Shown in pieces: positions 8,750-32,800 of a DNA stretch of 64,000 nucleotides. The notes beneath the pieces were generated by a model. That model was not told where the DNA came from. It saw only the letters and a program-made list of their open reading frames with translations, and did no database searches. The DNA lies in contig CM060731.1 of the NCBI GenBank assembly GCA_030704615.1, positions 25,544,001 through 25,608,000 on the forward strand, given 5' to 3'. The stretch is from Takakia lepidozioides (taxonomy: Eukaryota; Plantae; Bryophyta). Positions within the stretch are counted from its first letter, which is position 1. Each line of letters begins with the position of its first letter. A program made the translations under genes and the position numbers.

Positions 8750-8826
8750 AGCCTCCCATCAAGAATCGAACCCTGAACCTCGCCGCCTGCAAGGCTATCA
8801 CCTCACCATCACACTACCCACCAGTG
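8750..8826 (-). other. Degenerate tRNA-derived segment (SINE-head-like or tRNA pseudogene)
   Basis: Minus strand has an A-box-like TAGTGTGATGG and a B-box GGTTCGATTC at tRNA-like spacing. The acceptor stem does not pair well. Confidence 0.4.
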
Positions 8827-9469
8827 CTAACAACCCACTTGGATTCTTCAGTTACTAGGGCTTCGCGTTGCTCCGCACTACTAGCGACTAATTCTGAGAA
8901 CTATGTTCAATTTTTCACAAAAAAGGGGCGGGTCATCCCCATCGTGTTACATGCAGAGATCCCATGTTTTGTTTTTTCCTCGAAGAAAAATGGCGGATCT
9001 GCATTTCAACATTCAATTTTCACAAGCCACATCAATCAATAACAACATACCCAAATACCCTTACATTCACTGTATGAACTTTCAAGCATCCACCATGGGA
9101 TTGGATCTTGGTGGGTTAAGGCTAGCTTTTGACAACATTCATGCAAGTTCGTCAAGGGCTCCATCCAAAGCCACACCATGAGAAACAAACGTACATGTCC
9201 AAATTTAAGATGCTGAACAAACTTGTGCACAGGGCTGCCCCTCTCATCAAGCTCATTCAAATTCGTAATTCACTTCCATCTTCAAGCTTTGGAGAAGCTC
9301 CACCACCCAAACCCAGAATTAGGACAGGACCAGAATCAGTAAAAAAATCACCCCTTCAGTCAAGTGCAATTGTGGGCTGACTTCCTACCTATGCCGGGTA
9401 GACCCCACTATCAGGAAATGGTGCATGGTCTGAGTAGCTACACAGATCAATGAATGACTTCATTCAGTA

Positions 9470-11400
9470 GGTCAGTGTGGCTGTAGGCAGTGAGAACACA
9501 TATAAAGGTGATACTGTTTGTGTTGGGCGGTAGACCCTTTATTTTGCATTTGTTCATACATCTCAACAGCCTCCCTGCCATACTCATGCGGAGCATATGC
9601 TGCAATCATGGTCCTCCATGAAACCACATCATGTTGTGTCATATTGTCACCTGCCAGATGCGGCGTAGATGTTGGATAGCAGCACATAACCTGCATGGTG
9701 GTTGGGATCGCACTTGAGAAGAGATTTTGCTGCATGTTCTGCTACCTCCACATCCCCATGAATTCTGGCAGCAGCAAGCAAGGTCCCCCAAACCAGAGCA
9801 TCTGGTTCAATTGGCATTTTGTTGATGAACTCTTCTACCTCATCTCATCGGCCTACACGGCCAAGAAGGTCCACAATGCAGCAAAAATGCTCCACTGTAG
9901 GAGTGAGGCCGTGATCTCTACTCATGGAACCAAACAAGTGGTGGCCTTCATCCACCAGGCCTACATGCCTACAAGCAGAGAGAAGAGAAACGAAGGTGAT
10001 ACCATACCATCTCGCTTCAAGCCTTCCTGCTGCATCTGTTCAAATAGTTGGAAGGCCTTTGTACTACACCCATGCTGAGCATATCCTGCAATTATGGCAT
10101 TCCATGTTTGCTAAACCATATTTTCAAACACTTGACGTGCATCGTGAACACTCCCACATTTGGCATACATGTTAACAAGGGCATTGTCCAAGTTAATATA
10201 TGACACAACCCCAGCTTTGTTAATATCAGCATGGACCCGCGTGCCCTTTTCCAGGGTCCCTAGACTGGCACATGCATTGACAACAGAAACGAACGTGACC
10301 CTGTTCGGTGTCATCGCGTCCAGTTCCATTTGCTTGTATCTTGAAAGCCTCTTCAGCATATAGCCATGCTCAGCATAGCCATGCTCAGCATATCCTGTAA
10401 TCATGGCATTCCATGAGACCACATCTCGTTTAGGCATTTTGTCGAAAACCTGACGTGCATCTTTTCCGCTCCCACATTTGGCGTCAAGAAGGCTGTTCTC
10501 CACTTTAATATCCTGCAATCATTGCACTCCATGAGGGCTTCACCACTTCCCCCATCATTTGTTCATAGGTCTCCAAAGCCTCCATCCCGTTCCCCTTCTG
10601 TGCATACCCTGCAAGCATAGCGTTCCACGACACCACATTTCTTTCAACCACAGTGTCGAAAACTCCCTTCGCATCCTCGATCCACCCACATTTGGCATAT
10701 GTCCATCAGGGCAGTGTTCAGGATGAATCTGGTGCAATTCCAGCATTGACGATGTCACCACGGACCTCTTTCTCATTTTCCAGGGCTCCCAGGTTTGCAC
10801 ACACATTGCAACCTTGGTACAATTCTAGCTTTGATGATGTCACCATGCACCCTTTGCCCTTTTCCAGGGCTGCCAGGCTTGCACAAGCATTGCAAACGCA
10901 CACAAACATGATGTGGTCGCACTTCACCCCTTACCCATCATTTGCTCATAGGTCTCCAAGGCTCCATCCCGCGCCCCTGCTGTGCATATCCTGCAAGCAC
11001 GGACCTCTTTCCCCTTTTCCAGAGCTCCCAGGCTTCGCATTGCAAACACAAACAAATGTGATGTGGTTGGGCTTCACCCCTTCGCGCAACATTTGCTCCT
11101 AGATCTCTAAAGCCTCCATCCCGCACCCTTGCTGTGCATATCCTGCAATCATCGTTCAGCCATACTGTCGAACACTCCCTTCATACATGTCCACAAGGGT
11201 ATTGTTCTGAATGACATTTTGTACAATTGCAGGTCTGACAATGCACCCACATTTGGCATACCTGTCCGCCAGGGCAGTGTTCAGAATGACATCTGATACA
11301 ATTCCAGCTTGGACGATGTCACCACGGACCTCTTTCCCCTTTTCCAGAGCTCCCAGGTTTGCACACGCATTGCAAACACAAATGTGATGTGGTCGGGTGA
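9470..11400 (-). pseudogene. Scrambled PLS-class PPR gene fragments (P/L/S motifs and E-region pieces)
   Basis: Motifs DVVSWNAMITGYAEHG, TPNRVTFVSVVNACASLG, NALVNMYAKCGSVHDARQVF, DVVSWRTMIAAYA, with many frameshifts and deletions. 9950-10510 nearly duplicates 13385-13915. Confidence 0.9.
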
Positions 11401-12835
<1,435 letters not shown>

Positions 12836-12984
12836 TCAAGAAAAGTGAACTGGTTTGCCTTGCCAATGAAAACCGTAGGTGATGCTCTCAGAAAACAAGA
12901 ACGGGATCATCATATCCCATCCAAACAAAATCACTGCTTAGGATTCATAGTAACCCTAACTCATGACTGCCCACTTCTGAATCG

Positions 12985-13283
12985 TTTTCTTCAGCGGGTC
13001 AGTTTCGTGCAATCCAGCAGCTGCCTTCATGTAAGAGCTTCCATCAAGAATCCACTCCATGATGACTGCTGCCTCCATCTGACCTGGGTGGTGCTTCAGC
13101 TTGTGAGTTAATGGATCAGCAAACTCTTGCTTTCCTTGCATCACCTCGCAAAAGAGGGCTGAGAACCTCAGCAAGTAGGGCTAACACATTTCTATCGTAA
13201 CAGACCGTTGATGCCAAGCCTGACCCCACTGCCGTCCCATTAACAAGGGTGAGGCCCTCTTTTGGCTGCAGCTCAAAGGGCTT
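12985..13283 (-). pseudogene. PAL: Captured internal fragment of phenylalanine ammonia-lyase
   Basis: [23 protein letters not shown]...[45 protein letters not shown]...HETDPL, with one frameshift. Confidence 0.93.
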
Positions 13284-13310
13284 CACCCCTTCGCGCATCA
13301 TTTGCTCATA

Positions 13311-13388
13311 CGCCTGTACCTCTGTTTACCAACTTTGAAAGTCTCGAGGCTGAGCCAAACGCCCAGCCTAGTTATTGGGCAAACCACC
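13311..13388 (+). mobile_element. About 75-bp piece of the LINE family found at 34518-39437, embedded in a PPR fragment
   Basis: gcctgtacctctgtttaccaactttgaaagtctcgaggctgagcca...cctagttattgggcaaaccac matches 38747-38790 and 39152-39240. Confidence 0.85.
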
Positions 13389-14400
13389 AGGCCTACCTGC
13401 CTACAAGCAGAGAGAAGAGAAACGAAGGTGATACCATCTGGCTTCAAGCCTTCCTGCTGCATCTGTTCAAATAGTTGGAAGGCCTCTGTACTACACCCAT
13501 GCTGAGCATATCCTGCAATTATGGCATTCCATGCTTGCTGAACCATATTTTCAAACACTTGACGTGCATCGTGAACACTCCCACATTTGGCATACATGTT
13601 AACAAGGGCATTGTCCAAGTTAATATATGACACAACCCCAGCTTTGTTACTATCAGCATGGACCCGCGTGCCCTTTTCCAGGGCCCCTAGACTGGCACAT
13701 GCATTGACAACAGAAACGAACGTGACCCTGCTCGGTGTCATCGCGTCCAGTTCCATTTGCTTGTATCTTGAAAGCTCAGCATCGCCATGCTCAACATATC
13801 CTGTAATCATGGCATTCCATGAGACCACATCTCGTTCAGGCATTTTGTCGAAAACCTGACGTGCATCTTTTCCGCTCCCACATTTGGCGTCAAGAAGGCT
13901 GTTCTCCACTTTAATACACGAAGAAATTCCAGCTTTCATTATGTCAACTGGACCTCTTCGGCCTTTCCCAAGTCTCCTACACTGGCACATGCATTGAGAA
14001 TGCAAATGAATGTTATGTTGTTGGGCATAACCCCTTCCTGTTGCATTTGTTCATACATTTTGAAAGCCTCTGTACCAGATCCATGTTGAGCATATCCTGC
14101 ATTGCACTCCATGAGGGCTTCATTTGCTCACACGTCTCCAAAGCCTCCATCCCGCGCCCCTGCTGTGCACACCCTGCCCCTTCATGTTGCATTTGCTCGT
14201 AGGTCTCAAAAACATCCCTGCTGCACCCATGCAGAGCACATCCTGCAATCACTGAACTCCAAGGGGCAAAATTTCATTTTGCCATATTGTTGAAACTTGA
14301 CATGCATAGTTCATGCTCCCACATTCGGCATACATGTCAGCAAGGGCAGACTCCAGTAAGCGCTAATCCAGTTTTAACAAGGTCAGCGTGGATCTCTAAT
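13385..14400 (-). pseudogene. PLS-class PPR gene fragments
   Basis: ORF 13298..14005 contains RDVVSWNAMITGY, AWNAIIAGYAQHG and GLKPDGITFVSLLSAC. Further frameshifted motifs extend to about 14400. Confidence 0.9.
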
Positions 14401-16209
14401 CAGGCAGAGATTGAAACACGGCCTGGCAAGACCAAGCTGACTCTCGCAAGAACCTTGTAAACATCAGGAAGAATACCAAATCATGGTACTAACAGGAGGC
14501 AGAGATTGAAACACAGCCTGGCAATAACCTGTTGTGTGTGCTGCTTGTGTCTGTAGTCAGATAATGTCGGATCGATCTATGAATCTGGACCCACACTCGA
14601 TCCCTGCTCCTTCAGCTATCCATGCATGTGCTTGCATGGTGAACGATGGCGGAAAACGCAGAGCTCCTGCAGTTCAAGAAGATCAAGATCCGGGCATTGC
14701 GGGCAGTTCCAAAAACATTGGCGCGGCGATTTCTATTGGTCTATTTCTCACGGGCCGTTCGGGTAGATTTCAAAGAAATTGACGACGATGATGTGGCGAC
14801 GATGACGTGGCGACGAAACGTGGCGATGATGATGTGGCACTATGGCACCCTATTCCTGCTCTACGCTAAATTAGCTTCCGACCTTCGGTCGTCGCTAGAA
14901 CTAGGGCTTCGCGTTGCTCCGCACTACTAGCGAAAAATTCTGAGAACTTTCACAAAAAGGGCCGGGACATCCGCATGGTGTTACATAGACACATCTGATG
15001 TTTCATTGTTTCACGGAAGAAGAATGGCCGTTCAATCTCAATACTATGAACTAAAAGATAATCCCGTTACCCGCATATAGTGGGGAGGTCTGCACCTCGA
15101 TGTATATTAAGTATGGCTTGGCCGGTTTCCTACAAACAATATAGAGCATGGTGGGCGATGTGGCAGGTCTGCATCCCTTGGTACTTGGACTGGATGAGAA
15201 GAGGTTTAGCCAATCTGATGTGTGATGCACCTGCCTGTCTACCCCAGAATTGAATGGGATGGTGTTGGTTGGGATTGTGGGAAGGTGGTTGTGATAAATC
15301 TGTGAGTGAATTGTCAATCCCATATTGCAGCCACTGCATTGAATGTGTTGGGGAAAACAAGGGAAGCTCTTGAAGTGATGTCTTAGATTGATGCGGCATG
15401 ACAAATTCGAACTTTGACTTCAAACAGATGGGTGCATGACATTAAACCAGATAAAAGTGTAGACATTTTCTTTCTACACCTATTTCTGTCTTCATCTCCT
15501 TCAATCACTAAATTCCTCTGAGACAAATTGTGAGTTGATTGCAGGCCCAGAGCTGCTGCTGACTTCCACATTGACTGGTGACCTCCCAACAGAGTGCTAA
15601 AACCTTGGCTCCTTACTGTCATTTCTATCTGCCTTTCAAATTGTTGGAAAGTTGTGAGCAAAGATAATGGATCCAATGGGAGTGGCAACAGCAACCCAAG
15701 GCAGAGAAGTAACTGGTTTTCTGACATGTTCCTCTTAGACTTTCAAATTCTAACTGGCTTGCATTCCACATCCAATCAGCTGATGCTACCTCTACTTCCA
15801 CACGATTCAGTCTCCTACATGTAAAGAACGCCACTATTCCAATAATACATATGCAACTATGAACAAGATAATAGTTGGAAAGTTAACAGATCAGGGATCG
15901 TTCTCAAATTCGCACACAAAGAAAATGGGGAGAGGTGCAGTATGGCAGGCACAGGATATTATGTGCAAAAGATATGGTATGTATCACTTTTGCAACTTTG
16001 CTCGAGCATCGAAAGGGCCAGGATCAAAGCCTGGAATCACTTCATTATTGGTGAGGTAACCGTATCCATCTTCATGATTAATTAGCTAATGGTATGGCTT
16101 GCATTCTCTACAGTACATGTACCGAGTAATCGATCATTTTTCATTGCCAGACCACGACAGTAGCACACTTTCCTGTATCTTTTTCTCATAATCTCCAACC
16201 ATTATACCA

Positions 16210-16470
16210 ATACCCTGCTCCAAGTAAATATGATATCCAGTTCAGGCATTTTTATACATCCACCTTGGTCTCGCACTTGGCATGCATGTTGACAAGGGTG
16301 TTGAGTAGAGAGTTGTGTGGATTGAATCCCATTTCTGATGATATGGCAGTGCACCAGCTCTCCCTCTGCTGGGCCTTTTATGCTGATGCACTTTTGCAAG
16401 AGACAGGAATAAGTATTCTGCAGCAATGCCTTGAAAGGTTCAAGATGTCCAGCACCTCTGTCAAATGTCT
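16210..16470 (-). pseudogene. N-terminal PPR gene fragment
   Basis: NTYSCLLQKCISIKGPAEGELVHCHIIRNG, followed after a frameshift by LLNTLVNMHAKC. Confidence 0.7.
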
Positions 16471-17054
16471 GCAATGTGTACTCACATCCCCACAAATGCT
16501 GGAAGAGTTGTTGTTGACTCCCTCTCTTGGTCCTCATTCAAAAGCCGTCGAGTGCAGGTGTCCAATCAAGCAACTGTGCCTCATTCAACTAACATTTCTG
16601 TCTGCTTGAGGTGGAACTCTTATATGATCCACTAAACAGTACCCTATCTCCTGTCGGCCTGGGGTTCCATGGTGCACATTGACAGATTGTGATTGATCTT
16701 GTGCCATGGCAGATAAATGACCAACCCTCAATCCAAAGGCCCGCCTGTGTGCCATTCTGAGTCTGGTGATCTTGATCCTCTTCTTGACTGAATTCAGAGC
16801 TTTAACCACCACCTTCTCTGCTTTAATCACAGAAGCTTAAAGCCTCTAAACGGGGAACCCGAAATGCTGCTACCAAGGAAGTCAACCGATACCAAAAGTA
16901 GAAACCGCTTGTAACAAAGAGCAGAATTGTGGTTGATTTTAAGCTACCTGATACAATACTGTTGTCAGCATCACAAACCCTCCCTCACCATCTGCCAGAG
17001 CTGATAGTTTCTCCTTGATAGACCTGTGCACGATTACTGCCCCAACATCAGTAC

Positions 17055-19059
17055 TTAGCCAGCAACTGGTGGCTCTGCTGTGGTGATGGCGCTCTGTCCA
17101 GCAGGTGAATTCGCCAGCCCTCGGGGTGGGGGCATCATCTCCAGCATCTTGCTTGCATGCTCGTAAAAACTTGCCAAGTTGGCCCCCAAGTTCTTGGCAA
17201 TAGAGTCCTGGAGCAAAATCAGGTAGGTGTCATGCGTATCCTGCTGTGTGGCCAGAGTGAGCGCAACCCTAGACTCCATAGCTCCAAGGTCGTTCTTTAT
17301 TTCGTTCTTGATTGAGATAGCATGGGTTGCCAATTTTTGGTCGATTTCGGACATCATTGCCTCGTGCTCTTGCTTGGAGCTGGTGCCTGTCTTGATGTTG
17401 AGAGACTGCACAGTGTCCGCTAAAGCTTGATTAATATTGGCTACCCGCAGCCTCTCCAGAATGCCGGCTGCGGAGGGTGTAGCCCCGCTCAGACTGTTCG
17501 TGTGGGGTTCGAATGTGACATACTTGTCAATGACAAGTATATGAGGCCGATTACACCACTGGGTGTACACAATTGGATTCTTGCAGGTGATTAGATCAAG
17601 ACCTGTGTGCTTGACTTTCTCGGTTCTGGCTAACTTGCCGAAATGAATGTGCTCCAGGTTGTCTTTGCCCATGATGTCGCGAATTGCCACTTCAGTTGCA
17701 GTCTGTGAGTGGAGTGGGTTGAGGGTCTTGAGCACCAACGTGAGGGCGTCCCTCTCTGCTACAATCTCTTGTTGTGATGCAGCTTGTCCCGTCATACTGG
17801 TCCTTCTTGTGCGAACCACTGGCTTGATCAACGTGTGGTTTACTTGCACTCCCTGAATCAGCATCCGCTGCCTTGTGTCTTCTGCAGCCATGTAGATGAA
17901 GTAGAATGATGTGTCTGGGCCCGTTGTAGACATACATGATTTCGTATTCGTCACCGCGGTAGTATGTTTCCACAATGGTATGCATGGTTAGCTTAAAGCT
18001 GGTTGTACCCAGCAGAGCTTCGCTTGACATGTAGAGCGATAGATGATCTGGTGAGGCAGGGAGGTCAAACGCCTTCTCGATTTTACCTCTTCTTGGTACA
18101 CCGGAGGCCATTTCCAATACAAAGGCCCTGTCGCCTCGTAAGAGAGCCAGCCCGTCTGTGTGTGGGTGAAGTAGCTCGACCTTTAGTAGCCCAGACCAAT
18201 TCTTGCTTCCGTGTTTCGTGTACGCAGTAAGGGGTGAGTATAAGATCTTCCCGAGAGGGATGTTCATTGATTCGAATCGCTTCCGTGCTGCTCTGTATAG
18301 GGCCTGCGCTTTGGGCTTATCGAAGTCTTTGTCGAATCGTATCATCATGTGCGGAGGGGATAGCGGTATCCCAGACACCGGATTCAATTGGGTGCCCTTG
18401 GACAGTTATGTAAGTGGGTATAGTTGGCCCTCTCGCCCGTCCGGTCTTGTTGCTGGGAAGAGAAGTTGAGGCACCCTTGGGTAGGAATTGAGGCAGTGTT
18501 GCATATCATAGATTTTTGCATGGTAGAGGCCCAAGCTTTGGAGCTCGAAGCCCGACCGCTCCTCGGTGACATAAGGGGCATTGGAATCTTCCGCGATTTG
18601 TTACAGTGTCGGGTGTCCCATCCATAGTTGAGGGGTGGTGTAGGAGCTTGATGTGTTCCTGACTTGTAGAGGACCGGACTCAGCGAGTCCCCGGGACTTC
18701 TTAGAGTCTGAGTGACTGCTGCCCATGTCACTGTCAAATTTGCTTGAAGTTCGTTTGGTGCGGAGATTGATTGCCTGCATATCTGCCAGTGCGTTGGGTG
18801 CTGTGGGAAGCATGCGCTTGAGTGTACGTGTATATGGTGGTGTGATATCTGCTTGTATGGCATCGGTTTGCTTGTGCCCCCCCTTGGATGGGCTGTGTGT
18901 CGACTGTTCGTGGGCACCGGGCTCGGCGGCAAAGTATTGTTCTTCGGACGGGTGCATATCACTGGCGGCCACTTCTTCCTCGGGAAGGTACTCCATGTCT
19001 TTGTCGTTGTCCATGATGAGCTTCCGTGAGATAACACTATGCAAAGGGGGATTGCACAC
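17055..19059 (-). mobile_element. Frameshifted intronless ORF (about 650 codons), probably ORF1 of a non-LTR retrotransposon; no ORF2 downstream
   Basis: Overlapping ORFs 18601..19059, 17692..18387 and 17055..17975 give an acidic, disordered N-terminus, alternating beta/alpha RRM-like blocks (LTLVLKTLN...IRDIMGKDNLEHIHF...LITC...YVTFEPH) and a C-terminal coiled coil. The family assignment is from recollection of bryophyte repeat ORFs, not a search. Confidence 0.45.
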
Positions 19060-20155
19060 TGGCTTTCTTACTACGGGTCACTATGTGGGATTTGAGACTA
19101 GACTATTTCTGTATGCTGCCTGCACCTTTCAGAGTGCTTCCTAACTTTGAGCTAGACATACGTAAGTGGGTATTGGTGATTGTGAATTGGGGCAGGGTAG
19201 GTAGCTGTGGTGGGAATTAGTCTGACTTGGGGGTGAGGGCGACAGGGTGTAGAGGCTGCGTAGCAAGAGCGGAGACTAGTGCAGCATGAGTAAGGCAAAG
19301 CGAAGTGGGGAGTGTGGGGGCAGTGCATTCTGTTGGGCTATCTGTATGGGTAATATTGGTGTGTTTGAGGTGATTGTGGCATACTTGGTAAGTGTCCCTG
19401 CTCAGATTGTAAATTGGAGCAGGGCCGAGTTTGATGAGAGGAAAAACAGGCTGAAATAGGTCGAAGAAGGTGCCCTCACCACATTGTCCTTGACCATGTG
19501 TCATGACCCATGGAGGATTTGGCCGACCATCAACCAAAAAGGACCTCTTGTGTGTGTTGCTTATGTCTGTAGTCAGGTAATGTTGGATTGGTCTGTGAGA
19601 ACCACCACGGTGCGCATGCAAAGATTGAAACACGGTCTGCGAAGATGGTTTGCAGGATGGACAAACTTCTTCACATCTTACATTAAGTATTAGATAATGT
19701 CAATGTGGAGGAGCATTATCGAGAATAATCCGAGCTGCGGGAGCAGCTAGTTTGCGAGGATTATATGAGATTGCTTTGACGGATGGACATGATCTTACTT
19801 AATATGTCGGTATGGCTATTTGTCATTCAACGATTCATCCAAAACGGGTTTTCATCCAACGTATATGGAGACACCTGCATATGGAGACAATTATCGCTAA
19901 TAATATCATACCTGATTTAGGGAGACTACTATTAAGAAAAGGCACACCTTGCGATTGCGGTTGTCCCACTATCGTGAAAGTACTCATAATCTGTGAACGT
20001 CTCCATCTGCGAATCGCGAGAGATCAGTTGCTGGTATTGTTGAGCAAGGGATCTGCTGTGTGCCACAGACATCAATTTCGCTGCTCAGAGAGGGAGAGGT
20101 GCTTCTGGGTTTGCTCTAGGCTTGCTCTAGGCTGGAAACTAGTAGGCACCAGGTC

Positions 20156-20466
20156 CTGTAGCAAGAAAGGCTCGAAATAATAACCTGAACACAACGTCTG
20201 TTTGGCAGACTGATTGGCTCAGAAATCCGTATGCGAGGCTGCTGCAATATTTTCAATCTATAAATCCAGTGGATCTTGCCTTGAGTTTTTGATGCCCAAT
20301 GTGCAATGAATTCAGTAGGTAGTTTGACTGCTAGGAACATTATCTGGTGTGGCAGGTATGAGCCCATGTGGTACATGCTGGGGAGCCAGTACTTTTTGCA
20401 TGCATATGGCCCAATTTATGCTGTGTCTTCCGTGGTGGCAGGTCTGTCAGTTGCTAGAAATGACAG
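20156..20466 (+). pseudogene. Second copy of a GT31 galactosyltransferase intron plus exon
   Basis: Exon 20356-20466 YEPMWYMLGSQYFLHAYGPIYAVS...ARND with AG/GT borders. 20156-20382 matches 24119-24372. Confidence 0.8.
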
Positions 20467-21921
20467 GTATTGTTGTCATGAAGCTCCTAGTTTATTAAAA
20501 GTCTCATTGTATACTCTACTTGTGGGAATCAGGCCATAATCTGTGACTACACTTTACTGTCACGACTTGATTTTGAGGTGCAATGAGTGAACATTTCAGT
20601 ATTACTGACTGAGTGGGAGTGTCCTTTGAGCTCGAAGGTGGAAATGTCTCCAGGACCTGTACCTCATCTGAGATGAATAAAATCTGTGTAGAATTTCTAA
20701 ACTACGCAGAGGAAAGGTGATTGAATCAACTTGGAGAGGTCATATCTCAAGCTGTGATTGTTTGTAAGTTTAAAAGAAGGTCCGAGACCTTCTTTTAAGG
20801 GCAGGTCAAGGGTTTAAAAGTTCACGAAGGTCCGCCCTCCAATTCGGAAATGGGCATGTTTGGAGACTCAACCTCTGGATCTTCCTGAAAATTTTCTGAC
20901 ATATCTAGGAAGTGCCTGCCTAATTCAAAGGTGAAATTCTCGCTTGGATGAGAGAGGGGGTCTAATGTGCATAGTGGGCCTGTTTATCAGAGTTTCTCAA
21001 AATGCTGGAGGCAGTTAGGGTCAAGACTATTTGAAATTGTTGACAATGGAGATCGACTCATAACAAATCTGAACCTCGGGGTAGAAAAGCTCGCTGGCAA
21101 AAAGTGTACATAATATTATTTTGCCAGGAGTGCGCTTATACAACAGTTGAGAATTAGGTTGTGCAAGCATACCTACTAAAACAAGTGTTCCGCAACAATT
21201 GATATAAAGGATCACGTTAGTACTGTGCATCTGGTGGTCTTTACCATACATGAGATATGAGTTTGGGAGCCCCACTGAAGTCCTAAATGATTAGACACCA
21301 TAGGATCCGTTCTTCAACAAAATCCACTGGCAAACATTACAAATATAGGAAGGGAGGTCTAATGTCAGCAAGCAATTTGTTCTCTAATCCTGCGTTGGAA
21401 ATTACATCAAGAGGGGGGGAAGGCCCTGTAACTCATATTAGAGTGGTGTCCTGGGAAAAATAACCAGGCATACATGGTAAACAATCGGGTAATACCCAGA
21501 CAAGTTAGGAGCCTCGAAGGGCAAGCTAGTCTATATCCTCAGACCACGGCTCACTGTGGGACAGCTAGCTACTAGCCGCGGTTGTTCTGAACAAATACAC
21601 TGCGAGCACTTAGAGCGCGCAGAGACCACCTTCATCTCGAGCAGCGAGAAAACTGAAGGATGTACCAGAGATGAAGCCATGTCTTAATTAAGGCAGCCAA
21701 CTATAAGACCTGAAAACAGGCCTGAGTCCAACTAGCTAATCATCAGTTTCCAACAATAAGCTTGCGCGGCCTGATCCCAGTACACAGCCAGAATTGAAAC
21801 CATCGTGACTGATCCATTGTCAAGGCAGGGGCAGAGATGACGATAAGTCTTCAGCGCTTCTGCCTGAGTGCCTCAAAATTCAGATGTGAAAAATTCAGAT
21901 GCAGCATGTCAAGAGTATATG

Positions 21922-22593
21922 TTAAGTGGTGAGGCCCTGCAGAAAGGGACGTTGATCCAGAATATGAGGTAGCATCTGGTAGAATGACAATGGTCTGGAA
22001 CAGACACCATATTGAGCGTTCCTGCACCTTGCGTCCTTTTCAGCCTGCAAGTAGTTGATAGCTTTGAAGAAATCATCTGTGAAGGCGGGCACATGCTCAA
22101 CGGGCACACGATCAGCTCGATCGACTGTTCGTCTCTTCCGCAATTTTCCTCCCAGTGTGAATTTGAACTTGATCTTCCCATCAGGGCTGTCGCAGAGCCC
22201 ACTTCTACATTCACAACGCGGCTGGCCTTTGGTGATGGATCCGTTGTTCCAATAGAGGAACTTAATCTTGTCAGACAGACAGCGAGGACACTTCTTCTCC
22301 AATGGATGAAGCTCCAGAAAACGCTCAAGCTCGGCCGTGTCTCCTGCCTCACCTCTTTTTCTTTTCTTGGTTGTTGCTTGCTCAGAATCGGCCGCCATTC
22401 GTTCAACTTCCTGCAGAGCAAGGTCTTGCGTTGCCTGAATGTCAGGGATCTCTCCACCATAGATCTTTGGTGCAAGTTCACCAGGTTGTTGCTGTTGCAG
22501 TGGTCCAATCTCACCATCGGGACCTTTGACGAAATCCTCTAGAAACTGCATCCAATCTGTCTCATCAGTGTAAGTTTCTGCAAATTCCCCCAT
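21922..22593 (-). CDS. Intronless 223-aa ORF with a divergent Dof-like zinc finger and a basic NLS-like motif
   Basis: KKCPRCLSDKIKFLYWNNGSITKGQPRCECRSGLC versus the Dof consensus CPRCxSxxTKFCYYNNYxxxQPRxFCxxC. KKRKR upstream, acidic N-terminus, uninterrupted frame. Confidence 0.6.
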   Translation of the reverse strand: MGEFAETYTDETDWMQFLEDFVKGPDGEIGPLQQQQPGELAPKIYGGEIPDIQATQDLALQEVERMAADSEQATTKKRKRGEAGDTAELERFLELHPLEKKCPRCLSDKIKFLYWNNGSITKGQPRCECRSGLCDSPDGKIKFKFTLGGKLRKRRTVDRADRVPVEHVPAFTDDFFKAINYLQAEKDARCRNAQYGVCSRPLSFYQMLPHILDQRPFLQGLTT

Positions 22594-22915
22594 GAAGCGC
22601 GCAACGACGAGCCGATGCACACACACATGCGCCACCCCTCAGCACCAAAGTCTCAGGCGTAATGAGGATAGCAGTGTGGATCATACCCGCGCACAAGTAT
22701 GATTTGGAGTGTTTCCTTTGAAGGACAATAGGCCACATTTCCTAGTTAAGACACTGAGCTGTCGAGAAACGGGCCCTCGTCTTTCCCAGGTGTTTTCCCA
22801 GGTTAAAAGTTTCACATCAGTTTACACTTTTCACTTTTCACTTTTCAATTAACACTTTTCACTTTTCACCTGGGCAGGGAACTCATGTTGGATGTTTTGT
22901 GGGAGATGTATGCAG

Positions 22916-24372
22916 CCTTGAGAAAGCCACAGGACTAGCGTTCAGATTTGTATAGGGCATACTAGTGACTCCAGGAAAATGAGGGCACTGGAGGAGGAGA
23001 TTGCAACGACTTCATTCGCATTGATGTTGATGAAAACTGCCACAAGCTTACGCTCAAACGTATCCCTCTCTCTCTCTCTCTCTCTCTAACTAAATTTCAG
23101 CAGTGCTCGCATGAACTGTTTAGAGGCTGTGGGACTTACTTGGTGGGACCCCCTTTCACTTATCTCTTCAGTCGAAGAGTAAAGCCTTTTCCTACATCAG
23201 CCTCTCCTACCCTCTCCCTATCCCTGGAAGCTCTGGGGCCTCTTCTGTAGGCCACCCCTTCATTATTTGGTTCTGATGTGAATATTGTATATGTCTGAAA
23301 TCTTCCAAACACATTGCTATGACTGTGGGCTATTCAATCAATTGATTTACCCTAATCTTTAATCGAGGAGCCATAATTCCAATAGCACCCTGATGTACCT
23401 GCTGAGATGGAGTGTGATGGATGGCAATGCAGGTTGGCTTTTTTCAAAGCAGTGTACATGCTCTTTGCCGCTGACTTCTATGTCAAGGCAGACGATGACA
23501 TATATTTGCGGCCAGGTACTATGCTGACATGGCCCATTCGAAAACGAACAAGACAATAGGGGGGGAAAAGTGTTCGCCCTTTACAGCCACATTGAGTAGG
23601 GTGCTGCTTCTGATGGGTTTCCTTTGATAAACTATTAGCTCCTTGGATTGCAATGACAGTAAGATCAAACTTTCTTCAGGTGCAGCTGTGCACAAGTTTT
23701 TTGGGATGGCTTCATTGGCTCACTGCACTGGATGTGTCAAAGCAATCAACTGTATCATGGTAGCATTCTAGTATAGTATATGTGCAGATCGGTTGGCTAC
23801 TTTGTTGGCCAAGGAACGACCGAGTCGTAGGACATATCTGGGATGCATGAAAAAAGGCCCTGTTATCACAGATCCGGGCCTCAAATGGTATGTTTACCCT
23901 GTATGCAAGAGAATATATCAATAATGTGAACATTTGCTCATGATGGTCAATCAGATGGCTTGCTCTTGCCTGGGGCTTTTAAACTTCCCAGTGCTTGCTG
24001 TTGCATGCTTCGCTCAGAATTTTTGCATCATTGTGAACCCTCTTCTCCATTATGCTGACATCATCAACATTATCATGTCTCTCCCACTCAGATTCCCTGC
24101 AATGATGGTGCCTTCAGGCTGTAGCAAGAAAGGCTCGAAATAATAACCTCAACACAGCGTCTGTTTGGAAGACTGATTGGCTCAGAAATCCGTATGCTCT
24201 CGCTAAGTCCAAGTCTAGTCTCAGCAAATTAAGAGGCTGCTACAATATTTTCAATTTACAAATCCAGTGGATCTTGCCTTGAGTTTTTGATGCCCAATGA
24301 ATTCAGTCGGTTGTTTGACTGCTAGGAACATTATCTGGTGTGGCAGGTATGAGCCCATGTGGTACATGCTGG
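22916..24372 (+). pseudogene. Captured multi-exon fragment of a GT31 beta-1,3-galactosyltransferase
   Basis: Exons ~22916-23059 (LEKATGLAFRFV..., frameshifted), 23433-23515 ([27 protein letters not shown]), 23788-23887 ([34 protein letters not shown]) and 24347-24372 (YEPMWYML, truncated). Confidence 0.88.
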
Positions 24373-24529
24373 AGAATGATCGCCTTGATAAAAAATAATT
24401 GTCTTGATATTGATATCTGTTTTCAATGTTTTACACAGTCTGTTCAAATATTTACCAAACTATGGTTTTAATTGGTATTTTCTACGTGTAAAGCACATCT
24501 TGGCAGGATCTCCTGATTACTGAATGCTC

Positions 24530-25525
24530 AAGCTTCTCACATTCATGTTCATTTCTCATTATAGTGCCTCCTCCACATCATGCCATACAAAGCACATGTC
24601 AGGCACATACCCAGTCCTTGGACAAGTTCTTCAGCTTCGCATGAATTTCCTCCATTTGTGGATGCAGCATGTCTTCTGCTATGAATTTTTGCACCTGGTC
24701 GTCTACCTCAATGCAGCTATGCCCAGGCTCCTTCTGTCACACCTGCCCCCAAATCATTGTTCTCACCTTTGCTGCATACCTGCCAGCCACTGCATATATG
24801 CTTGATAGTAGCATGTAAGTTGCAGCTGATAGTGGATCCAACTAGAGAAGGGATGTGCTGCACATTCTGCTAGCTCTACATTGCCAATTCTGCAGGCAGC
24901 AAGCAAGGCCCCACAAAGTGAAGCATCTGGTTCCATTGGCATGTCATCAATGAAGTCATCGACATCATCCAATTGCCCTGCACGGCCAAGAAGATCCACC
25001 ATGCAGCCAAAATCCTCCACTCCAGGAGTAAGGCCATGATCTTGACTCATGCAATCGAAGTAGTGGCGGCCTTCATCCACCAGGCCCGCCTGGCTACAAG
25101 CAGAGAGAAGACAGAGAAAGGTGATACTGTCCGGTTTCAACCCTTCCTGTTGCATTTGTTCAAATAGTCCGAGGGCCTCCCGACCACACCCATGCTGGGC
25201 ATATCCTGCCATCATGGTGCTCCATGAGACCACGTGTTGACATATCGTTGAGCCATATCGTTGAACACTTGACGTGCACTCTTTAAGCTCCTGCATTGGC
25301 AAACATGTTGACAAGGGCAGTCTCGAGGATATAATCAGGCACAATCCCAGCTTTGAGGACGTCAGCATGTACCTCTGTGCCTTTTTCAAGAGCTGCCAGG
25401 CTGGCACAGGCCTTGCGAACACAAATGTACGTGACCTCATGGGGGTCACCCCTGTCTGTATCATTTGGTCATACATGTTGACAGCCTCCTTACCCCACCC
25501 ATTCGCCGCATATCCTGCAGTCATG
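24530..25525 (-). pseudogene. C-terminal PLS-E-(DYW) PPR fragment with a PG box and truncated DYW start
   Basis: VVSWSTMMAGYAQHG, LLSACSQAGLVDEG, CMVDLLGRAGQL, ALLAACRIGNVELAE, then PGHSCIEVDDQVQKF and GYVPD..FVWHDVEE with stops and frameshifts. Confidence 0.88.
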
Positions 25526-25580
25526 GACTTGAGAAAAAGACAGAATTCACAACAGGTTGCTGCAATGTATATCCAAAGAC

Positions 25581-26640
25581 CTGTTTGGCGTCCCTGCAGC
25601 AATATTGACGCGCTCTTCTAAGGCAGTCACCTGAAAAACACAGAAAAATCCATATGTGAACCCCAGGTGAAAATCAACTTCTACTAAGGCTGCCAGGTAT
25701 CAGCTGCAAGGAGATTTGAAGCTGATTACTGCTACACATGGTTATAAACCTGAAAATGTTGCACACATGACTTGGCATATCCACCAGTGTGGCCTCCAAC
25801 AGATTTCTCACATCCTGTCAGCTCTTTGAGGCTCTGCTTGCAGGAGTTCAGCGATCCAGAGTCTGGTACATATGTGTGGCTCTAGGAACGCAGTATGTAA
25901 CTCAGAAATTTGAAGGATGTAGCATGCCACTAAGCTTGATCAACAATCAGACTAGAACACAAAGCCAGCACCACAGTATCCATTGTCGAGCTCTCAAGTG
26001 ATGTTCTATGCACCTGCTCCTCCACCTTGATATGCTTGGCAAATAGCTTGACAGGTTTACACTTGCCTGTGAACACCTTCAATCCCCTGTTCATAAAACC
26101 ACGGGAGTCTCCCTGTCAGCTGCCACAAACCCACTTTCACCATCATCACCCCTTCAAGAAAACTTATTGAATGTGGTGCTTTGTGCTCGTCATGGACGGA
26201 TTAAGTCATTTCAGGTTTTCTCTAAAACAGGCTCTTTTGCCTTGAAACTCTAGCCCATGGGGCAAGAATTCACGTTGTTGGAACAAACAAGCAAATTAAA
26301 AGTGACAAATTAGAACAAACAGAATGCCTTAGCGACCCCAGAGTGTGATATATACACATATATATAAATATATATCTCACCTCAGAAGCTCAACACATCA
26401 TATAGCAGAGCTGCAGAGGACCAGAACAACTGGGCTGCCAGCTTCACTTGCCACTCCAGCCTTGTCTTCTCCACAAAGGATATCCTTCCACGTGGGCCCA
26501 ATCATTGTTTTCACATGTGCCCCTAAACTCTCCACACTGTGATCTCTTTCTTCTGAGATCTGAACTACTCTGTCTTCTGCTCGAAACCACCGAGAACAAG
26601 TCTTAAATAACCTCCTCATTCTCTGAAACACTCCCTCCCG
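25581..26640 (-). pseudogene. CMS1: Captured 3-exon fragment of CMS1/CMSS1 (U3-associated pre-ribosomal, helicase-like protein)
   Basis: Exons ~26640-26381 (GSPVVLVLCSSAI*CVELLR, premature TGA), 26086-26014 (GLKVFTGKCKPVKLFAKHIKVEEQ) and 25630-25581 (VTALEERVNIAAGTPN), all with GT-AG borders. Confidence 0.8.
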
Positions 26641-27295
26641 CACTCTTGTGTATAGGAATCAACGTCCACCACGACTACGAGTATGCTTTCAACAGGATCT
26701 CATCATCAACATGAAACGAGTGCATCTCAATAACTCCCTCACACAAACGACCTGCCAAAAATGTAAATCATGAAGTTGTAAGCCGTCATAAAGCAACCAC
26801 CGAAAATTATAGGTCTAAAAGCAACCAAAACTTCGATTGACAGTCACTATAAGAACAATCAGTAGGGTGGAGCTCTGTAAGATCATTACCCACTGTACAC
26901 TGGACACAAGATTTTCTCCATCAACGTTGCCACTGGGTAATAGGGTAACCTCCGATTGGGCTTCAGATTCCACTACATTAAGGCTTCACTCATCAGTTGG
27001 TGTTGTCCATGGACTCTGTGAAGGAGGGCAGGCACTTGGTGGTCAATGGACTGGAGACAGTCCTGATAACATTAACCTTTCTGTCTCAATTACTGACACC
27101 TTCAGCATACTCGAGACAAAAGCATTTGGATAGAAGTAGTAAGTGGCTAGAGTATGTTTGACAATTTCAAACATTTCAATGACAAGGCAATGAGCCATAC
27201 CAGAGTGAGGTCTGCTCCTGACCTGGACAGTCGCATTGAGAAGATGAGGGACAATGTTCTGAAAATGAACTCCACGCTTCTTTCACGAAAAGCAT

Positions 27296-27400
27296 TCACC
27301 TTTATGTCTCCATTGTCCCACCATTGTCTGGGGTCGGGAAAGTGTTCATTCCAAAGCTTCTCCTCTGTTATCTGTTTTTGGATACTTTCCTGCTGCCACA
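27296..27400 (-). pseudogene. Fragment with the first half of an OSB-type PDF ssDNA-binding motif
   Basis: EEKLWNEHFPDPRQWWDNGDIKVN resembles the motif LW..FF.NP..WWDNR..K.N. Truncated before PDFKHK. Confidence 0.6.
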
Positions 27401-29865
27401 TCGGCAGTAACTTGTCAAAGTCACTCCAAACCACCACAGATCCACCCAACGAGCTAACTTACAGAATTCAATATGATAAATATGATGAAGAGGGAAAATG
27501 AGAGGGAAAATATCTCAAATGAGATGCAAATATCTCATTTATATCTCAGAATTCAATATGATGAAGAGGGCAAAACAGGCAGAAATAGGTGGAAGAAGAA
27601 GGTGCCCTCACCACATTGTCCTCGAGACCTTGTCTCATGACCCATGGAAGATTTGACCGACCATCAACCCAAAAAGACCTCTTGTGTGTTGAGTCTGTAG
27701 TCAGGTAATGTCGGATTGGTCAGTGAGAACCACCACGGTGCAGCTGAGCAGGCAGAGATTGAAACACGGTCTGCTAAGACCAAGCCGACTCTCCCAAGAA
27801 CCTTGTAAACATAAGGAAGAATACCAAATCGTGGTGCTAACAGGAGCCAAGTGCTAATACTCTTCATTTCAGAGCTTATCCTCGTCTATGTTATATTCTG
27901 TGAAAAATGTTGTGCAGCATCCACCAGGATCGACCGGTGTGTGAAACTCCTCCGCGCATGGCATCGTCGTCCCTTCCCCGCGCTGCAAGACAGTTACTTT
28001 TGGGCAGTTCGGGCAGATATAAAACATTTGACGACGATGACATGGCTACGAACGTGGCGACGATGACATGGTGACGACAATGACATGGTGACGATGATGA
28101 GGCACGATGGCACCCTATTCCTGCTCTATGCTAAACTAGCTTCTGACCTTCGGTCGTCGCTACAATGAGGCAAACAGCGGATTTCGTCAGCAAAATAAAT
28201 CAAGGTATCGGGTTTCACCAACGAAATTTCAAGGTATCGTTGCGTAGGTCATTATCCAAGGGTTTCGTGGGCGAAACAAAATGAGTTGTGTTTGATTATG
28301 CGTATGAGGAACGACGTGAGATTGGTTTATTTCGCTAACGAATTGTTACATGCTTATTGCGGTAGGTCATTCCCCATGCTTTCATGGGCGAACAAAGAGA
28401 ATTTCGCATATTAGTGATTGCTACGAATGTCAACTGCACATGATTAAATATGCAACTATTAATCAACGAAAATTGCACAAATTTCACGTTTTTAAAGCAT
28501 TTTCCAAGAATATTCTTGGAATATGTTGCATATGCTCTTCTGCTCATGTGAGCGCAGTCGCACATAGGCTCTCCCCAACCTCCTTGGAAGTGGTTGTGGG
28601 TTGAATCCACTGATTGGTGTCACAAGGTAGTCGACCTACGTGCCGGAAGGCAATAGCCCTTGGGGGCAAGAGATACCATAATTTGCGCTTCCTTATGGAT
28701 GCATCATGTATTATTATTACAAAGGAATCAGGGGGTTTAAGAACCCAAAAGTTCACCAGAAAACGTGAGTAGTTGATATTAGGAACCTGATTTTGCCTAC
28801 GTGAGCCTGTTAGAACGTGCCACCTGTTACATATCCACTTTTCTATCCTGCCACCTCATATTCTGGCCACATGGTTGTTGGGTGGAATTTACATGTGGCC
28901 CATGTGAAAAATGGAAAAAAAAACACTAGTTAGGATGACCATCCTACTTGACTGAAAACGGTGGGACACCCAGTTTTCCAAACAACACACCCAAGTTTTT
29001 CCCAAAACCAAACGGGCAGCACAGTGCAGTTCGCAAATCACTATAAAGGAAGTATACCCGTTATCTTATCAAATAATCTGAAAACTTAAGAGAAGGTGAC
29101 CAATATTATGGGGCGTGTTCCCAAGCCGTTTAGGCATTTTGAACAGATTTGTGAATTTGTTTCTTACTCAGATTGTAGAGACTTTTTCATGCTCAATACA
29201 AAATACAGAGAAGATTCAAATGCCTGCAGCAAACTGCTATGAAATTTTAGATGCCCCTGAGCTAGCCATCTTTCCCACAACATAAACAGTAGTATGTACA
29301 ATTGAGAGAGTACACTACAATAAAAACAATGTCAATATTATTAATAGTACACGGGCCATGTTCAGCCATGCATGCTTTCATTTAGAAGGTTAACTATAGT
29401 CCACAATTGCAGCAGACCAAGTTTATTCCTACACAGACCAATCTAATTCAGGAAGGGCTCATATCCCTCACCGAATTGATGTCACAATGCAATACTCCTA
29501 GTCCTGCTGGAGCAGTGGATGAAAGAGGCATAGGCCACAGCATAACAATGCAAAACTGAGAGAGTACAGGAAGCTATCTAGTCCATTGACTTAAGGGCTT
29601 AGTTGTGATACTTCAGCATTGATGTCCTGCAAAATGTTGTCAGCGGGAGACACTGACATGCCAAATGTCAACCAAATGACACATGAGAGACCACTTTCAA
29701 GAAATCACCAACTTGTGATGTGCATGTCCGTTTTAACTACATTGACATTTCCCCTTCCAAGCTACCCAGGAGAGATGCACTCCCGGTAAATTCAGCTGAA
29801 GTCAGTTTATGTCAAAATCAATAACTTGATAAATCAAATGCAATCGCGAAATCAAATTTAGGGCA

Positions 29866-32800
29866 TCAATACAGTTTGCAAAGCTGCGGTCTGCTGCAAA
29901 AGAGGCGTCCACTCTTACGCACCAATGTTGCAAGACCTGCTGTAAATCCTGCTAATACTATGGCATAAACATACTGGTACACATCCGTGCCCGCTGCACC
30001 CACCCAACCCATACGCAGATGTGAGAAATGGATGCTTTACATGTGTGTCCACTTTGAATATAACTATCACTTGACCTGAAGGGCAGGGTTTCCTGTTGGA
30101 TACTAACCCTCCTTCAGGCAGTAATGTGAGTTCTCCACCTACCAGAGCACCCAACTCAGCTCGACCTGAAGGGCAGGGTTTCCTGTTGGATACTAACCCT
30201 CCTTCAGGCAGTAATGTGAGTTCTCCACCTACCAGAGCACCCAACTCAGCTCGACCTGAAGGGCAGGGTTTCCTGTTGGATACTAACCCTCCTTCAGGCA
30301 GTAATGTGAGTTCTCCACCTACCAGAGTACCCAACTCAGCTCAAATTGACTCTGTTGTCAATGATCCTTTTGTGCATAAGCTACTGCATACCCTTGAGGC
30401 TGCATCCCCACCAGATGCTCTCAAAACGGGCTACTGTATCCACTTACCAACCTACTAAATTGCACCCCATACTGCAGGTTCAGATGACTAAGAGAGAGAG
30501 AGAACACACGCGACTGCTTGCTAATACGGTCCAAAGGATACCTTGGCGAATGGAGAGAGAGGTTAAAGTAACACCCGTCACAATCAAAGCTGAAGCCACC
30601 GGGAGGTACTGCATCATCCACCAATTGTCAGAATCTGCCTCAAAGTGGAAACAAAAGAAAGACTATACAATAGACTATGAGAAGGAAGTAAACTTCTGTG
30701 AAAAGGGACCAAGAAAACAGAGGAGGAGACTCACTGCAGATGCATCCAACTGAAAAGGCATCAAGAAAAAAGAGGAGGAGACTCACTGCATATGCATCCA
30801 ACCCAGTCAACTGAAATGGAGAGGGACTGCCACGGCTCACTGTATAGTGCCCTGCTACAAGATCCATAGCATCCTGGCAAAACCAAGAACTTCCTCATAC
30901 AAATCTCTTTTCGAACCTGTACAGCTTATATCCACACAAGCATCACCAGAACCAAGTCCATTCTGCCCTCACTGGTGGGAAAAGTAAGAGGTCACTCTTG
31001 CTTCGATATTTACATAATGAGCTTTCTGGACTACATAAACAGTGGTCCACAATGAAGTTTCAATATAACGACACCCATTATACTCCCTAATTGGACTAAA
31101 GCAAGACATTTGTCATGAGGACAGTTATCATAATCACTTTCAAGAAAGGCTATAGCAAGTGAGGCATCAGATCAAGGCTTGGACAACAACAGGACTCTGC
31201 CCTGAACACAAAGAGCAATTGGGGTTCTGATTGGTGACTTGCAACATGTAAGGCCATGTGGTGTCTTCATAGCATTGTCTGTAATGACACGACCAACAAA
31301 CCAGGATACTTGTTCTTTAGAGAGGGATTCACAGAAACAAATGGCAAGCTGCTGCTGATGGAATACCTGTCTGACACCATCTTGGAAGTTGTTATAGTAG
31401 TAACGGGCCAGTGAATTGATCCCGTCCTGAATGAGTCCATGCAGAGTCCGCCTCCCGAACCTTTCAACGTCAACAAACCAACCCCATAAGCATGAGAGAT
31501 TCCCATACCGATGCTCAGTTTCAAAAGTCAAAATCATCAATCCAGACCTGCTTGTCTACCAACCTCACCCCAGAAGAGACATCCAAAGCACAGTTTTTAT
31601 CTTGCTAGAATCTGTCAGAAATAGGATACCTCACAAAGTCGCCCTTGAGAGCCTGAGTGCCGGAGTACTGAATGCTTATTTCATCTCCGTGATCAGCCCA
31701 CACTGTTCACAAAGATGTAGAATCCACAATCACCATAATGCTCAATGGTCACAACACATGAGCCAGTGAATTCCAATGACAAATAGAAATCCCAACCAAC
31801 TCAAATGGCACAAATAAATTGATAGCCGGGTGCCCTAATTCATGACGTGATTTGAAGAATCGCAAAGTAGCAGGGAAACCAATAATATTTCACAGAAACA
31901 AGCCCTATTTTCCAAAGAAGGACAGAAACAAGGAAGAGAAAAAGAGAAAAGATGATGAAGATGTACTTAACAAACTTAAAAGTTTGCCATAGCACTGTGG
32001 CCATGGATTACAGAGAGAGAATGTACTCAAAGACAGTGTTTGCCGTAGCCTTGTGGCCATAGACCCTGCCCCCAGTTTGTGCAGGGATAGACACTGTCTT
32101 TGTGAGCGGCTCACTCTGGTAGTGGGACTTACCTATATAAACGTTAGTTCGAGCTTTACAGATATCCTCTAGAAAGCTCTTCACACAAGCATCATCTGCT
32201 GTGTGTGAGCAACAAGAGAGACTGTACTCATGCCATTGTCTGCGAACATTCTTGCCATAGCCTTACGGCCGTTGACCTGCGGGAAACTAACCCTCCAGGA
32301 GCCTTTTGTGGGGTTCACACCCACCAGGGTTTACCTTATCCCTGCAGTTCAGCAGCAGGTATAAACTTATTTTCCCACAACTGCCTTAGGGGGTTCACAG
32401 AGGCACTTGTCTGCATGCAAACTCGAGAGCCTGGTTGCAGAGTTATTGATATTAGTTTTACAGCCCTGCGTTTCCCATAGAAATGACATGCTTGGGGACA
32501 TGCGGGGCACAGGTTTCCGCCTGTCACTCTGGGCAGGGCAACTCAAGAGAGAGAGAGAGAGAGAGACTTTGGAAGACAATACAAACAGTTTTGTAGGGAG
32601 ATTATGCAATCATTGCACATAACTTACAAATTTTAAACTTCTCATCAAAATCCAAATGTTGAAAGAGAGTCTCAGAGGCCTCGAAAAGGCCAATTCGCTT
32701 TAGTTGTGTCTCCAAAGCCTTCCGCCCTATCAAGCTCTGGGTGACCACAACCCTCCTGATGTAAGAAAAACTCATGCCACCAATTTGATGCTCATTACTG

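Follow-up and report, generated by a model that had tools for sequence, protein, structure and literature searches.

The DNA considered here, referred to as the window, is a stretch of 64,000 nt from Takakia lepidozioides (GCA_030704615.1, contig CM060731.1, positions 25,544,001-25,608,000 of the forward strand). Two large units lie side by side on its minus strand: unit 1, of 6,046 bp (8855-14900), and unit 2, of 13,265 bp (14901-28165). The two have their ends in common, are bordered by different flanks, and can each be described as a non-autonomous rolling-circle element, since each lacks a Rep/helicase (Rep/Hel) domain. Between the ends lies captured cargo in which pentatricopeptide repeat (PPR) modules dominate. 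The units are probably two diverged members of one abundant, non-autonomous Helitron-like family with ends of the Helitron2 (HLE2) type.

Boundaries and ends of the two units

Along the minus strand, unit 2 (28165-14901) comes first and is followed directly by unit 1 (14900-8855) in a head-to-tail arrangement. The inner junction reads ...GGTCGTCGCTAGAA|CTAGGGC... on the plus strand and ...GCCCTAG|TTCTAGCGAC... on the minus strand. A first-pass annotation of this DNA had given the minus-strand junction in the same form and had proposed that two units with common termini abut at 14900/14901; direct reading of the boundary, together with exact matches of the ends, confirms this arrangement. The 33-nt left end, CTAGGGCTTCGCGTTGCTCCGCACTACTAGCGA, is found without mismatch at two places in the window, 8855 and 14901, and the 26-nt right end also occurs twice (at 14872 and 28137), with one Y position that varies; in each case 0 occurrences are expected by chance. 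At the left end, homology between the units extends for ~150 bp, with 96% identity over the first 48 bp and 78% thereafter, and at the right end it extends for ~110-150 bp at 87%. The alignment of unit 1 with unit 2 ceases at the proposed ends, and the outer flanks resemble neither each other nor the inner junction. Consequently, homology beyond the ends, which had been named as a sign of ordinary duplication, is not seen between the two copies. The outer flanks (...CAGTTA and TGAGGC...) show no target-site duplication (TSD), again as first described.

The abundance of the ends is apparent from contigs of four public sequencing runs of the same organism, aligned at 80% likeness to positions 12000-17900, which surround the inner junction. 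Summed contig depth, which is not the same as copy number, reaches 134,068, 86,707, and 68,387 in the three bins that cover 14364-14954 (the 5' region of unit 1 together with the initial 54 nt of the 3' end of unit 2), drops to 592 in the bin that starts at 14955, and is ~100-230 over unique cargo, for example at 12000-12984 and 15152-16136. This contrast of several hundred-fold shows that the ends belong to a large repeated family, and the earlier reservation that the termini might be single- or low-copy is at odds with these depths. The conserved portion of the family is short at the 3' side (~55-90 nt) and long at the 5' side (~500 nt). A 20-mer from the 3' end also gave four matches to bacterial contigs in a metagenome scan; these have no extended homology and were dismissed as chance.

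On the minus strand, each unit runs from TT(C/G)-TAGCGACGACC-GAA-GGTC... to ...GTCGCTAG-TAGTGCGGAGCAACGCGAAGCC-CTAG, which is followed by T. The 5' end of unit 1 (14872-14900) opens with TT. Next to it lies the 5' inverted repeat, CTAGCGAC(G), and this provides one side of a nested hairpin (TAGC-GA-CGACC-GAA-GGTCG-GAA-GCTA); a 5-bp stem with a 3-nt loop is present in 2.5% of random 30-mers drawn from the window. The 5' end of unit 2 (28137-28165) has TTG in place of TTC, and mutation of one base of the hairpin leaves a 4-bp stem. The 3' end of unit 1 (8855-8887) contains the other copy of the inverted repeat, GTCGCTAG (8880-8887), which ends 26 nt before the 3' terminus, then the hairpins GCG..CGC and GCGAAGC, then CCTAG and the flanking T. 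The 3' end of unit 2 (14901-14933) is identical to that of unit 1 at 33/33 positions, and its inverted repeat has decayed to TCGCTAG.

The asymmetric terminal inverted repeat, CTAGCGAC/GTCGCTAG, measures 8 bp in unit 1, and 6-7 bp of it are left in unit 2. When a 14-mer and a 50-mer are drawn at random from the window, they match over 8 bp in 0.6% of cases. Most copies of the family appear to have a longer repeat. At positions 14934-14935, where unit 2 has AA, C and G are present in 58 and 50 contigs, respectively, among those listed, and C and G account for 47,900 and 47,400 of a summed depth of 48,235 in the same contigs. Most family copies thus read CTAGCGACG(A) on the plus strand, which gives an inverted repeat of ~9-10 bp with the 5' end (TTCTAGCGACGACC); the chance of a repeat of this length is 0.13-0.035%.

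Both units also contain a short tandem repeat with a period of 14-17 nt, present in 3-4 copies at 60-120 nt from the 5' end, that includes the same CGTCGC core as the terminal inverted repeat. In unit 1 it has a period of 14 and 4.1 copies, at 63-118 nt from the 5' end (14783-14838, minus strand); the equivalent repeat of unit 2 has a period of 17 and 2.8 copies (28054-28100, minus strand). By analogy with rolling-circle plasmids, one may speculate that these repeats are an iteron-like array to which a Rep protein binds.

Captured cargo

A Pfam search found no Rep or helicase domain in any open reading frame (ORF) of at least 90 aa in either unit or elsewhere in the window, in agreement with the first-pass annotation, and Rfam and tRNA scans of the window gave no matches. 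All of the recognizable cargo lies on the minus strand and thus has the orientation of the elements. The junctions between cargo segments are sharp and sometimes in frame.

In unit 1, the upstream block of cargo (13301-14360) consists of PPR repeats of the PLS type in broken frames (Pfam PPR_2, 4e-29; PPR, 6e-27). A fragment of phenylalanine ammonia-lyase (PAL) follows at 13158-13290 (Lyase_aromatic, 1e-10), joined in frame to a PPR snippet; the PAL/PPR breakpoint lies at ~13278, and 82 contigs run on as PPR where unit 1 switches to PAL. Next is a thioredoxin-reductase-like fragment (11405-12805; Pyr_redox_2, 6.8e-15 and 5.8e-9) that has kept its introns. Its three exons, each of which was searched separately, lie at about 12590-12805, 12099-12205, and 11405-11662, and the last of these passes straight into PPR sequence within a single frame (ORF 11159-11761). 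The downstream block (9475-11400) again contains PPR repeats, here with an E motif (E_motif, 3.9e-9, at 9650-9844). A direct duplicate within unit 1 (9952-10510 and 13384-13916, 93.6% identical) brackets the PAL and reductase insert.

A 1,170-nt contig found in two possible RNA runs (X5 and X7) matches the reductase exons with 4 mismatches and skips 12206-12589, which has GT..AG borders on the minus strand. The source of this spliced contig could be either the parent gene or a captured copy that is transcribed. Since a DNA run has the same G variant at 12128, another copy is as likely a source as the unit 1 locus.

Unit 2 carries PPR repeats that are ~75% identical to the modules of unit 1 (24766-25617; Pfam PPR, 1.9e-24), and an ORF with a Dof-like zinc ribbon (21925-22638; Zn_ribbon_Dof, 3e-8, 34.1 bits against a cut-off of 26.6). 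At 17058-19077 there is a fragment that resembles ORF1 of a long interspersed nuclear element (LINE), in frameshifted ORFs and with no reverse transcriptase downstream. A protein search with this ORF gave two relatives only, at 37-38% identity, which in their own contigs precede endonuclease and reverse transcriptase genes; for P0001 (38%), the genes downstream are Exo_endo_phos_2 and RVT_1. The ORFs at 17-19 kb were also considered as part of the LINE that lies at 34.5-39 kb in the window, and this was rejected, as there is no similarity by tblastx. Finally, a PPR-like fragment at 16137-16727 has no Pfam match and is itself present in high copy (depth peak 21,152); contigs join 13863/13867 to 16257/16274.

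Capture from at least six unrelated genes had been proposed. Five kinds of cargo are confirmed (PPR, PAL, reductase, Dof-like, and LINE ORF1-like), but a sixth is plausible only. A candidate for it is an ORF at 27150-27458 on the minus strand of unit 2, which has no Pfam match and contains ...DPRQWWDN..., a sequence that we take to resemble the PDF motif of plant organellar single-stranded DNA-binding (OSB) proteins. The PPR cargo of the units contains no DYW domain, the PPR frames are fragmented, and nothing indicates a working editing factor or functional chimeric PPR frames.

The interiors of the two units had been described as almost entirely different. This needs to be corrected: they have in common ~1.2 kb of PPR-coding modules, which align at 72-80%, and two 5'-proximal segments, which align at 86-92%. 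The broader interpretation fares better, in that the units are non-autonomous and have asymmetric ends without a TSD, multi-copy termini, sharp boundaries, co-oriented cargo, and a head-to-tail order, all of which a rolling-circle family would be expected to show. Unit 2 also has internal repeats of its own. At 19432-19645 there is an 85% copy of a segment (27559-27779) whose usual place is 390-600 bp from the 5' end, and a second direct repeat (20235-20381 and 24233-24372, 92%) has its copies 4 kb apart. Either internal rearrangement or an older composite structure may have left these repeats. The copy at 19432-19645 was considered as part of a third, truncated element inside unit 2, and this was rejected, as no end sequences are present nearby.

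Placement among rolling-circle elements

Helitron2 elements are defined by asymmetric terminal inverted repeats, given as 8-15 bp (PMC3627910) or 12-16 nt (PMC11417382). One copy of the repeat is set back from the 5' end by 0-2 bp and contributes to a 5' hairpin; the other is found 20-30 bp before the 3' end, directly upstream of a hairpin; and the element begins with T (PMC3627910). The inverted repeat of unit 1 and of the family majority falls within the 2013 range (8-15 bp) and below the 2024 range (12-16 nt). The 5' repeat begins at nt 3, after TT, and forms an arm of the 5' hairpin. The 3' repeat stops 26 nt short of the terminus, and GCG..CGC and GCGAAGC come after it, although this hairpin is weak by standard parameters. 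Both units start with T. On these structural grounds, the units would be placed with Helitron2/HLE2. Use of the plus strand as the sense strand would give a layout of the "HLE2-reverse" type. However, the orientation of the cargo and the T(T)C...CTAG|T reading favor the minus strand.

The published non-autonomous Helitron2/HLE2 elements, which include Helitron-5_SMo and HelenSM92 of land plants (PMC3627910, PMC11417382), resemble the units in having an asymmetric inverted repeat with its 5' copy within 2 nt of the end and in a hairpin, a 3' repeat near the end (26 nt in the units) before a hairpin, a T start, no TSD, many non-coding derivatives, and a land-plant host. The units differ from them in their 3' CTAG, 5' TC, and short repeat (8-10 bp). 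The likeness is one of end structure; the T|T target and a RepHel of the HLE2 clade belong to the published elements. A parallel at the 5' end is found in FoHeli1 and FoHeli2 of Fusarium oxysporum (Helitron2; PMC5148889), which start with T(T)C and have the same ambiguity between TC and TTC. Their 5' stem stands on a GAA loop (TCAGCC GAA GGCTG, compared with CGACC GAA GGTCG in the units), and the 5' arm is repeated in inverted orientation tens of bp before the 3' end. They differ in having an ATTTT end, a 12-bp repeat 38-51 bp from the end, an autonomous length of 5-6 kb, a TNAT|A target, and no sequence homology with the units. HINE/DINE-1 and the Helentron-derived elements of oyster (PMC4067079, PMC7492417) also have subterminal inverted repeats, a 3' stem-loop, internal short tandem repeats, high copy number, and frequent arrays. 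Unlike the units, they are short elements whose repeats measure 12-15 bp and whose ends are runs of T; they are linked to Helentrons with an endonuclease and contain little gene-derived sequence. An endonuclease-bearing RepHel, which the term "Helentron-like" in its strict sense would need, is not present in the window.

Several observations weigh against this placement. The units bear the marks of canonical Helitrons (HLE1), with (T)TC...CTAG in unit 1, (T)TG...CTAG in unit 2, and a T after CTAG. The length of the inverted repeat is at the lower limit of what has been published, and in unit 2 it is only 6-7 bp; the reading of the family majority comes from the contigs listed, with two copies that can be aligned. 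Within the window there is no autonomous RepHel partner; DUF6570 would mark one of the HLE2 clade. In both units, the hairpins fold no better than shuffled sequences with standard DNA parameters (z -0.06 to -0.76; for the 3' hairpins, which have 2-3-bp stems, z is -0.06 and -0.23), and alignment of these two copies shows no compensatory stem changes between them. Thus, the nested 5' palindrome that had been reported is present in the sequence of unit 1, but its folding energy does not exceed that of shuffles, and in unit 2 its stem is mutated. The GCGAAGC heptamer is an unusually stable DNA mini-hairpin whose stability is missed by standard energy parameters, and this may perhaps be the reason for the weak fold scores. 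GCGAAGC at the 3' end and the loop of the 5' stem have a C-GAA-G core in common.

The target site is a further point of doubt. Both 3' ends are followed by T, and the base that flanks the 5' ends is T if the elements start with TC/TG and A if they start with TTC/TTG. Three empty sites are compatible with the outer flanks. The first, CCTCA|TAACTG, implies an A|T target, TTC/TTG starts, and direct abutment of the units. The second, CCTCATT|TAACTG, implies two successive T|T insertions, TC/TG starts, and one host T between the units. The third is a variant with a variable number of terminal Ts, such as has been described for Helentrons. The window contains no paralogous empty site for the outer flanks. 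The target dinucleotide is therefore ambiguous between A|T and T|T, which also weighs against an HLE2 assignment; the first-pass annotation was correct in leaving the subclass open on this point, as the flanks fit both.

In the first alternative, the units would be canonical HLE1 Helitrons, with a TC start, a hairpin and CTRR at the end, and insertion at A|T, and the 8-bp inverted repeat would be incidental or a quirk of the lineage. We regard this as possible but clearly the less probable assignment. Unit 1 begins with (T)TC and both units end with CTAG followed by T. With TTC/TTG starts, the elements would have A|T or G|T at their 5' junctions, and the empty site expected from the outer flanks, CCTCA|TAACTG, would be of the A|T type. 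Where a host A meets the first T of an element, the A|T target is formed anew, which would explain the tandem insertion, and most land-plant Helitrons are HLE1 (PMC11417382). Canonical gene-capturing plant Helitrons of the HLE1 type, for example in maize and rice, resemble the units in their 5' TC, 3' CTAG followed by T, and lack of a TSD; they are likewise of multi-kb size, contain co-oriented, intron-bearing fragments of several genes, and have been reported in tandem insertions. However, the units lack the canonical 16-20-nt GC-rich palindrome at ~11 nt (10-12 nt) from the 3' end, where they have only 2-3-bp stems with z about 0, and they possess an asymmetric inverted repeat together with a 5' hairpin. 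A 5' hairpin that includes the terminal inverted repeat is the feature that separates Helitron2 from Helitron1 (PMC3627910). Furthermore, the inverted repeat is longer in the family majority, among the contigs listed, than in the two copies, which argues for selection on the repeat, and unit 2 begins with TG rather than TC. A combination of TC/CTAG with Helitron2 architecture is indeed present, as the first-pass annotation had emphasized under the name of hybrid terminal features, but it is not without precedent: the proto-Helentron of Phytophthora has mixed features too, with HLE1-like ends and a transposase of the HLE2 clade (PMC11417382). This element differs from the units in being autonomous and from an oomycete, and its stem-loop lies in the 5' end, a long way before the left repeat.

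It is far less probable that the units are non-autonomous partners of another type of Rep-encoding transposon, such as a Replitron, which has a Y1 Rep and no helicase. Replitrons are present in liverworts, mosses, lycophytes, and ferns in up to ~1,300 copies, move by copy-and-paste, and have terminal motifs plus palindromes (PMC10288648), and the short sequence CTAG does recur at either end of unit 1. However, CTAG spans just 4 bp and is a palindrome, and unit 2 carries GTAG at its 5' end. Replitrons terminate in short direct repeats of ~6 bp (for example, TAAAGG), and neither a 5' hairpin nor an asymmetric inverted repeat has been described for them (PMC10288648), whereas the architecture of the units fits Helitron2 point for point. 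Least credible of all is an ordinary segmental or tandem duplication in a PPR gene cluster without any transposon pair: despite the PPR modules that recur in both units and the 93.6% duplication within unit 1, the common ends (87-96%) are more alike than the common PPR cargo (72-80%), homology ceases exactly at the ends with unrelated flanks, the ends stand several hundred-fold above unique depth in the reads, and the units differ greatly in size and content. DDE transposons with terminal inverted repeats, long terminal repeat (LTR) elements, and LINEs or short interspersed nuclear elements (SINEs) were also considered for the units and were rejected, as there are no true terminal repeats, TSD, LTRs, or poly-A.

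Mechanism, significance and neighborhood

The following scheme is modeled on the biology of known Helitrons. The 5' end would be nicked at its T start by a RepHel transposase whose gene lies elsewhere. The strand would then be unwound and displaced in the 5' to 3' direction, halting at a 3' signal composed of the inverted repeat, the small hairpin, and CTAG. The end point may be marked by pairing of the two inverted repeats with each other, as has been proposed for Helitron2 (PMC3627910). The cargo was acquired as DNA rather than by retroposition, because introns are retained in the reductase fragment, and the sharp, sometimes in-frame breakpoints fit capture by end bypass or by template switching. 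The tandem would most likely have arisen by insertion of one element precisely at the edge of the other, since a junction of the flank with the 5' T recreates an A|T or T|T target. Unequal size, different cargo, and a divergence of 4-22% at the ends show the units to be two family members rather than a concatemer of one element. Such a pair could later move as a composite by bypass of the inner 3' end. Tandem insertions of Helitrons and of Helentrons have been documented in several organisms.

The elements are a new family of a known kind, and gene capture and tandem arrays are classic Helitron traits. The first-pass annotation had described large-scale capture as much less well known for elements with subterminal inverted repeats in plants. 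Elements of the Helitron2/HLE2 type are already on record from land plants: a Helitron2 was named in 2013 (Helitron-5_SMo; PMC3627910), and HLE2 was found in 13 land-plant species in 2024 (PMC11417382). Helitron2/HLE2 elements were long believed not to occur in land plants, and structure-based Helitron finders overlook them. The less familiar features of the units are the scale of the cargo and the dominance of PPR within it. Non-autonomous Helitron-like elements have a published mean length of ~2 kb, compared with cargo of 6 and 13 kb here, and a literature search found no work that links Helitrons to PPR or DYW cargo.

A bolder proposal, which we put forward tentatively and consider unlikely as it stands, is that an abundant Helitron2-type family has been a main vehicle for copying, shuffling, and fusing PPR modules of the PLS class (the RNA-editing-factor type). 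Rolling-circle transposition would then have made a substantial contribution to the very large PPR family of this lineage, with occasional expressed chimeras (PPR-PAL, reductase-PPR). If the family does carry a large share of the PPR modules, it would offer a concrete mechanism at the DNA level for the expansion of editing-factor genes and for domain shuffling in early land plants. A high-copy family with exact ends would also aid annotation of the genome, and would keep hundreds of transposon-borne PPR fragments from being called genes. In addition, the presence of TC/CTAG ends together with Helitron2 architecture bears on the relation between the two groups of Helitrons.

The left flank of the pair (8455-8854) is repeat-like, with many GGGTTACA / TGTAACTCC motifs in both orientations, and the pair may have inserted at the edge of this repeat-like element. 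The motif stretch is followed by a tRNA-like segment (a GGTTCGATTC box on the minus strand) that is possibly a SINE; ARAGORN finds no tRNA there. An intact ORF of 226 aa at 6755-7432 on the plus strand, 1.4 kb from the units, encodes a plant invertase/pectin methylesterase inhibitor (PMEI, 3e-25) and is probably a host gene. On the other side of the pair, the LINE of the window (34559-39026, plus strand) contains Exo_endo_phos_2 and RVT_1 in four frameshifted ORFs. A partial, inverted copy of this LINE (95%) lies 2 kb downstream at 40947-42632 on the minus strand, diverged copies include one at 51497-52947, and short fragments of the LINE tail are scattered over 39-55 kb. Local tandem duplications at 4739-5147 and 30067-30342 (97-99%, with periods of ~200 nt and 90 nt) are unrelated to the units.

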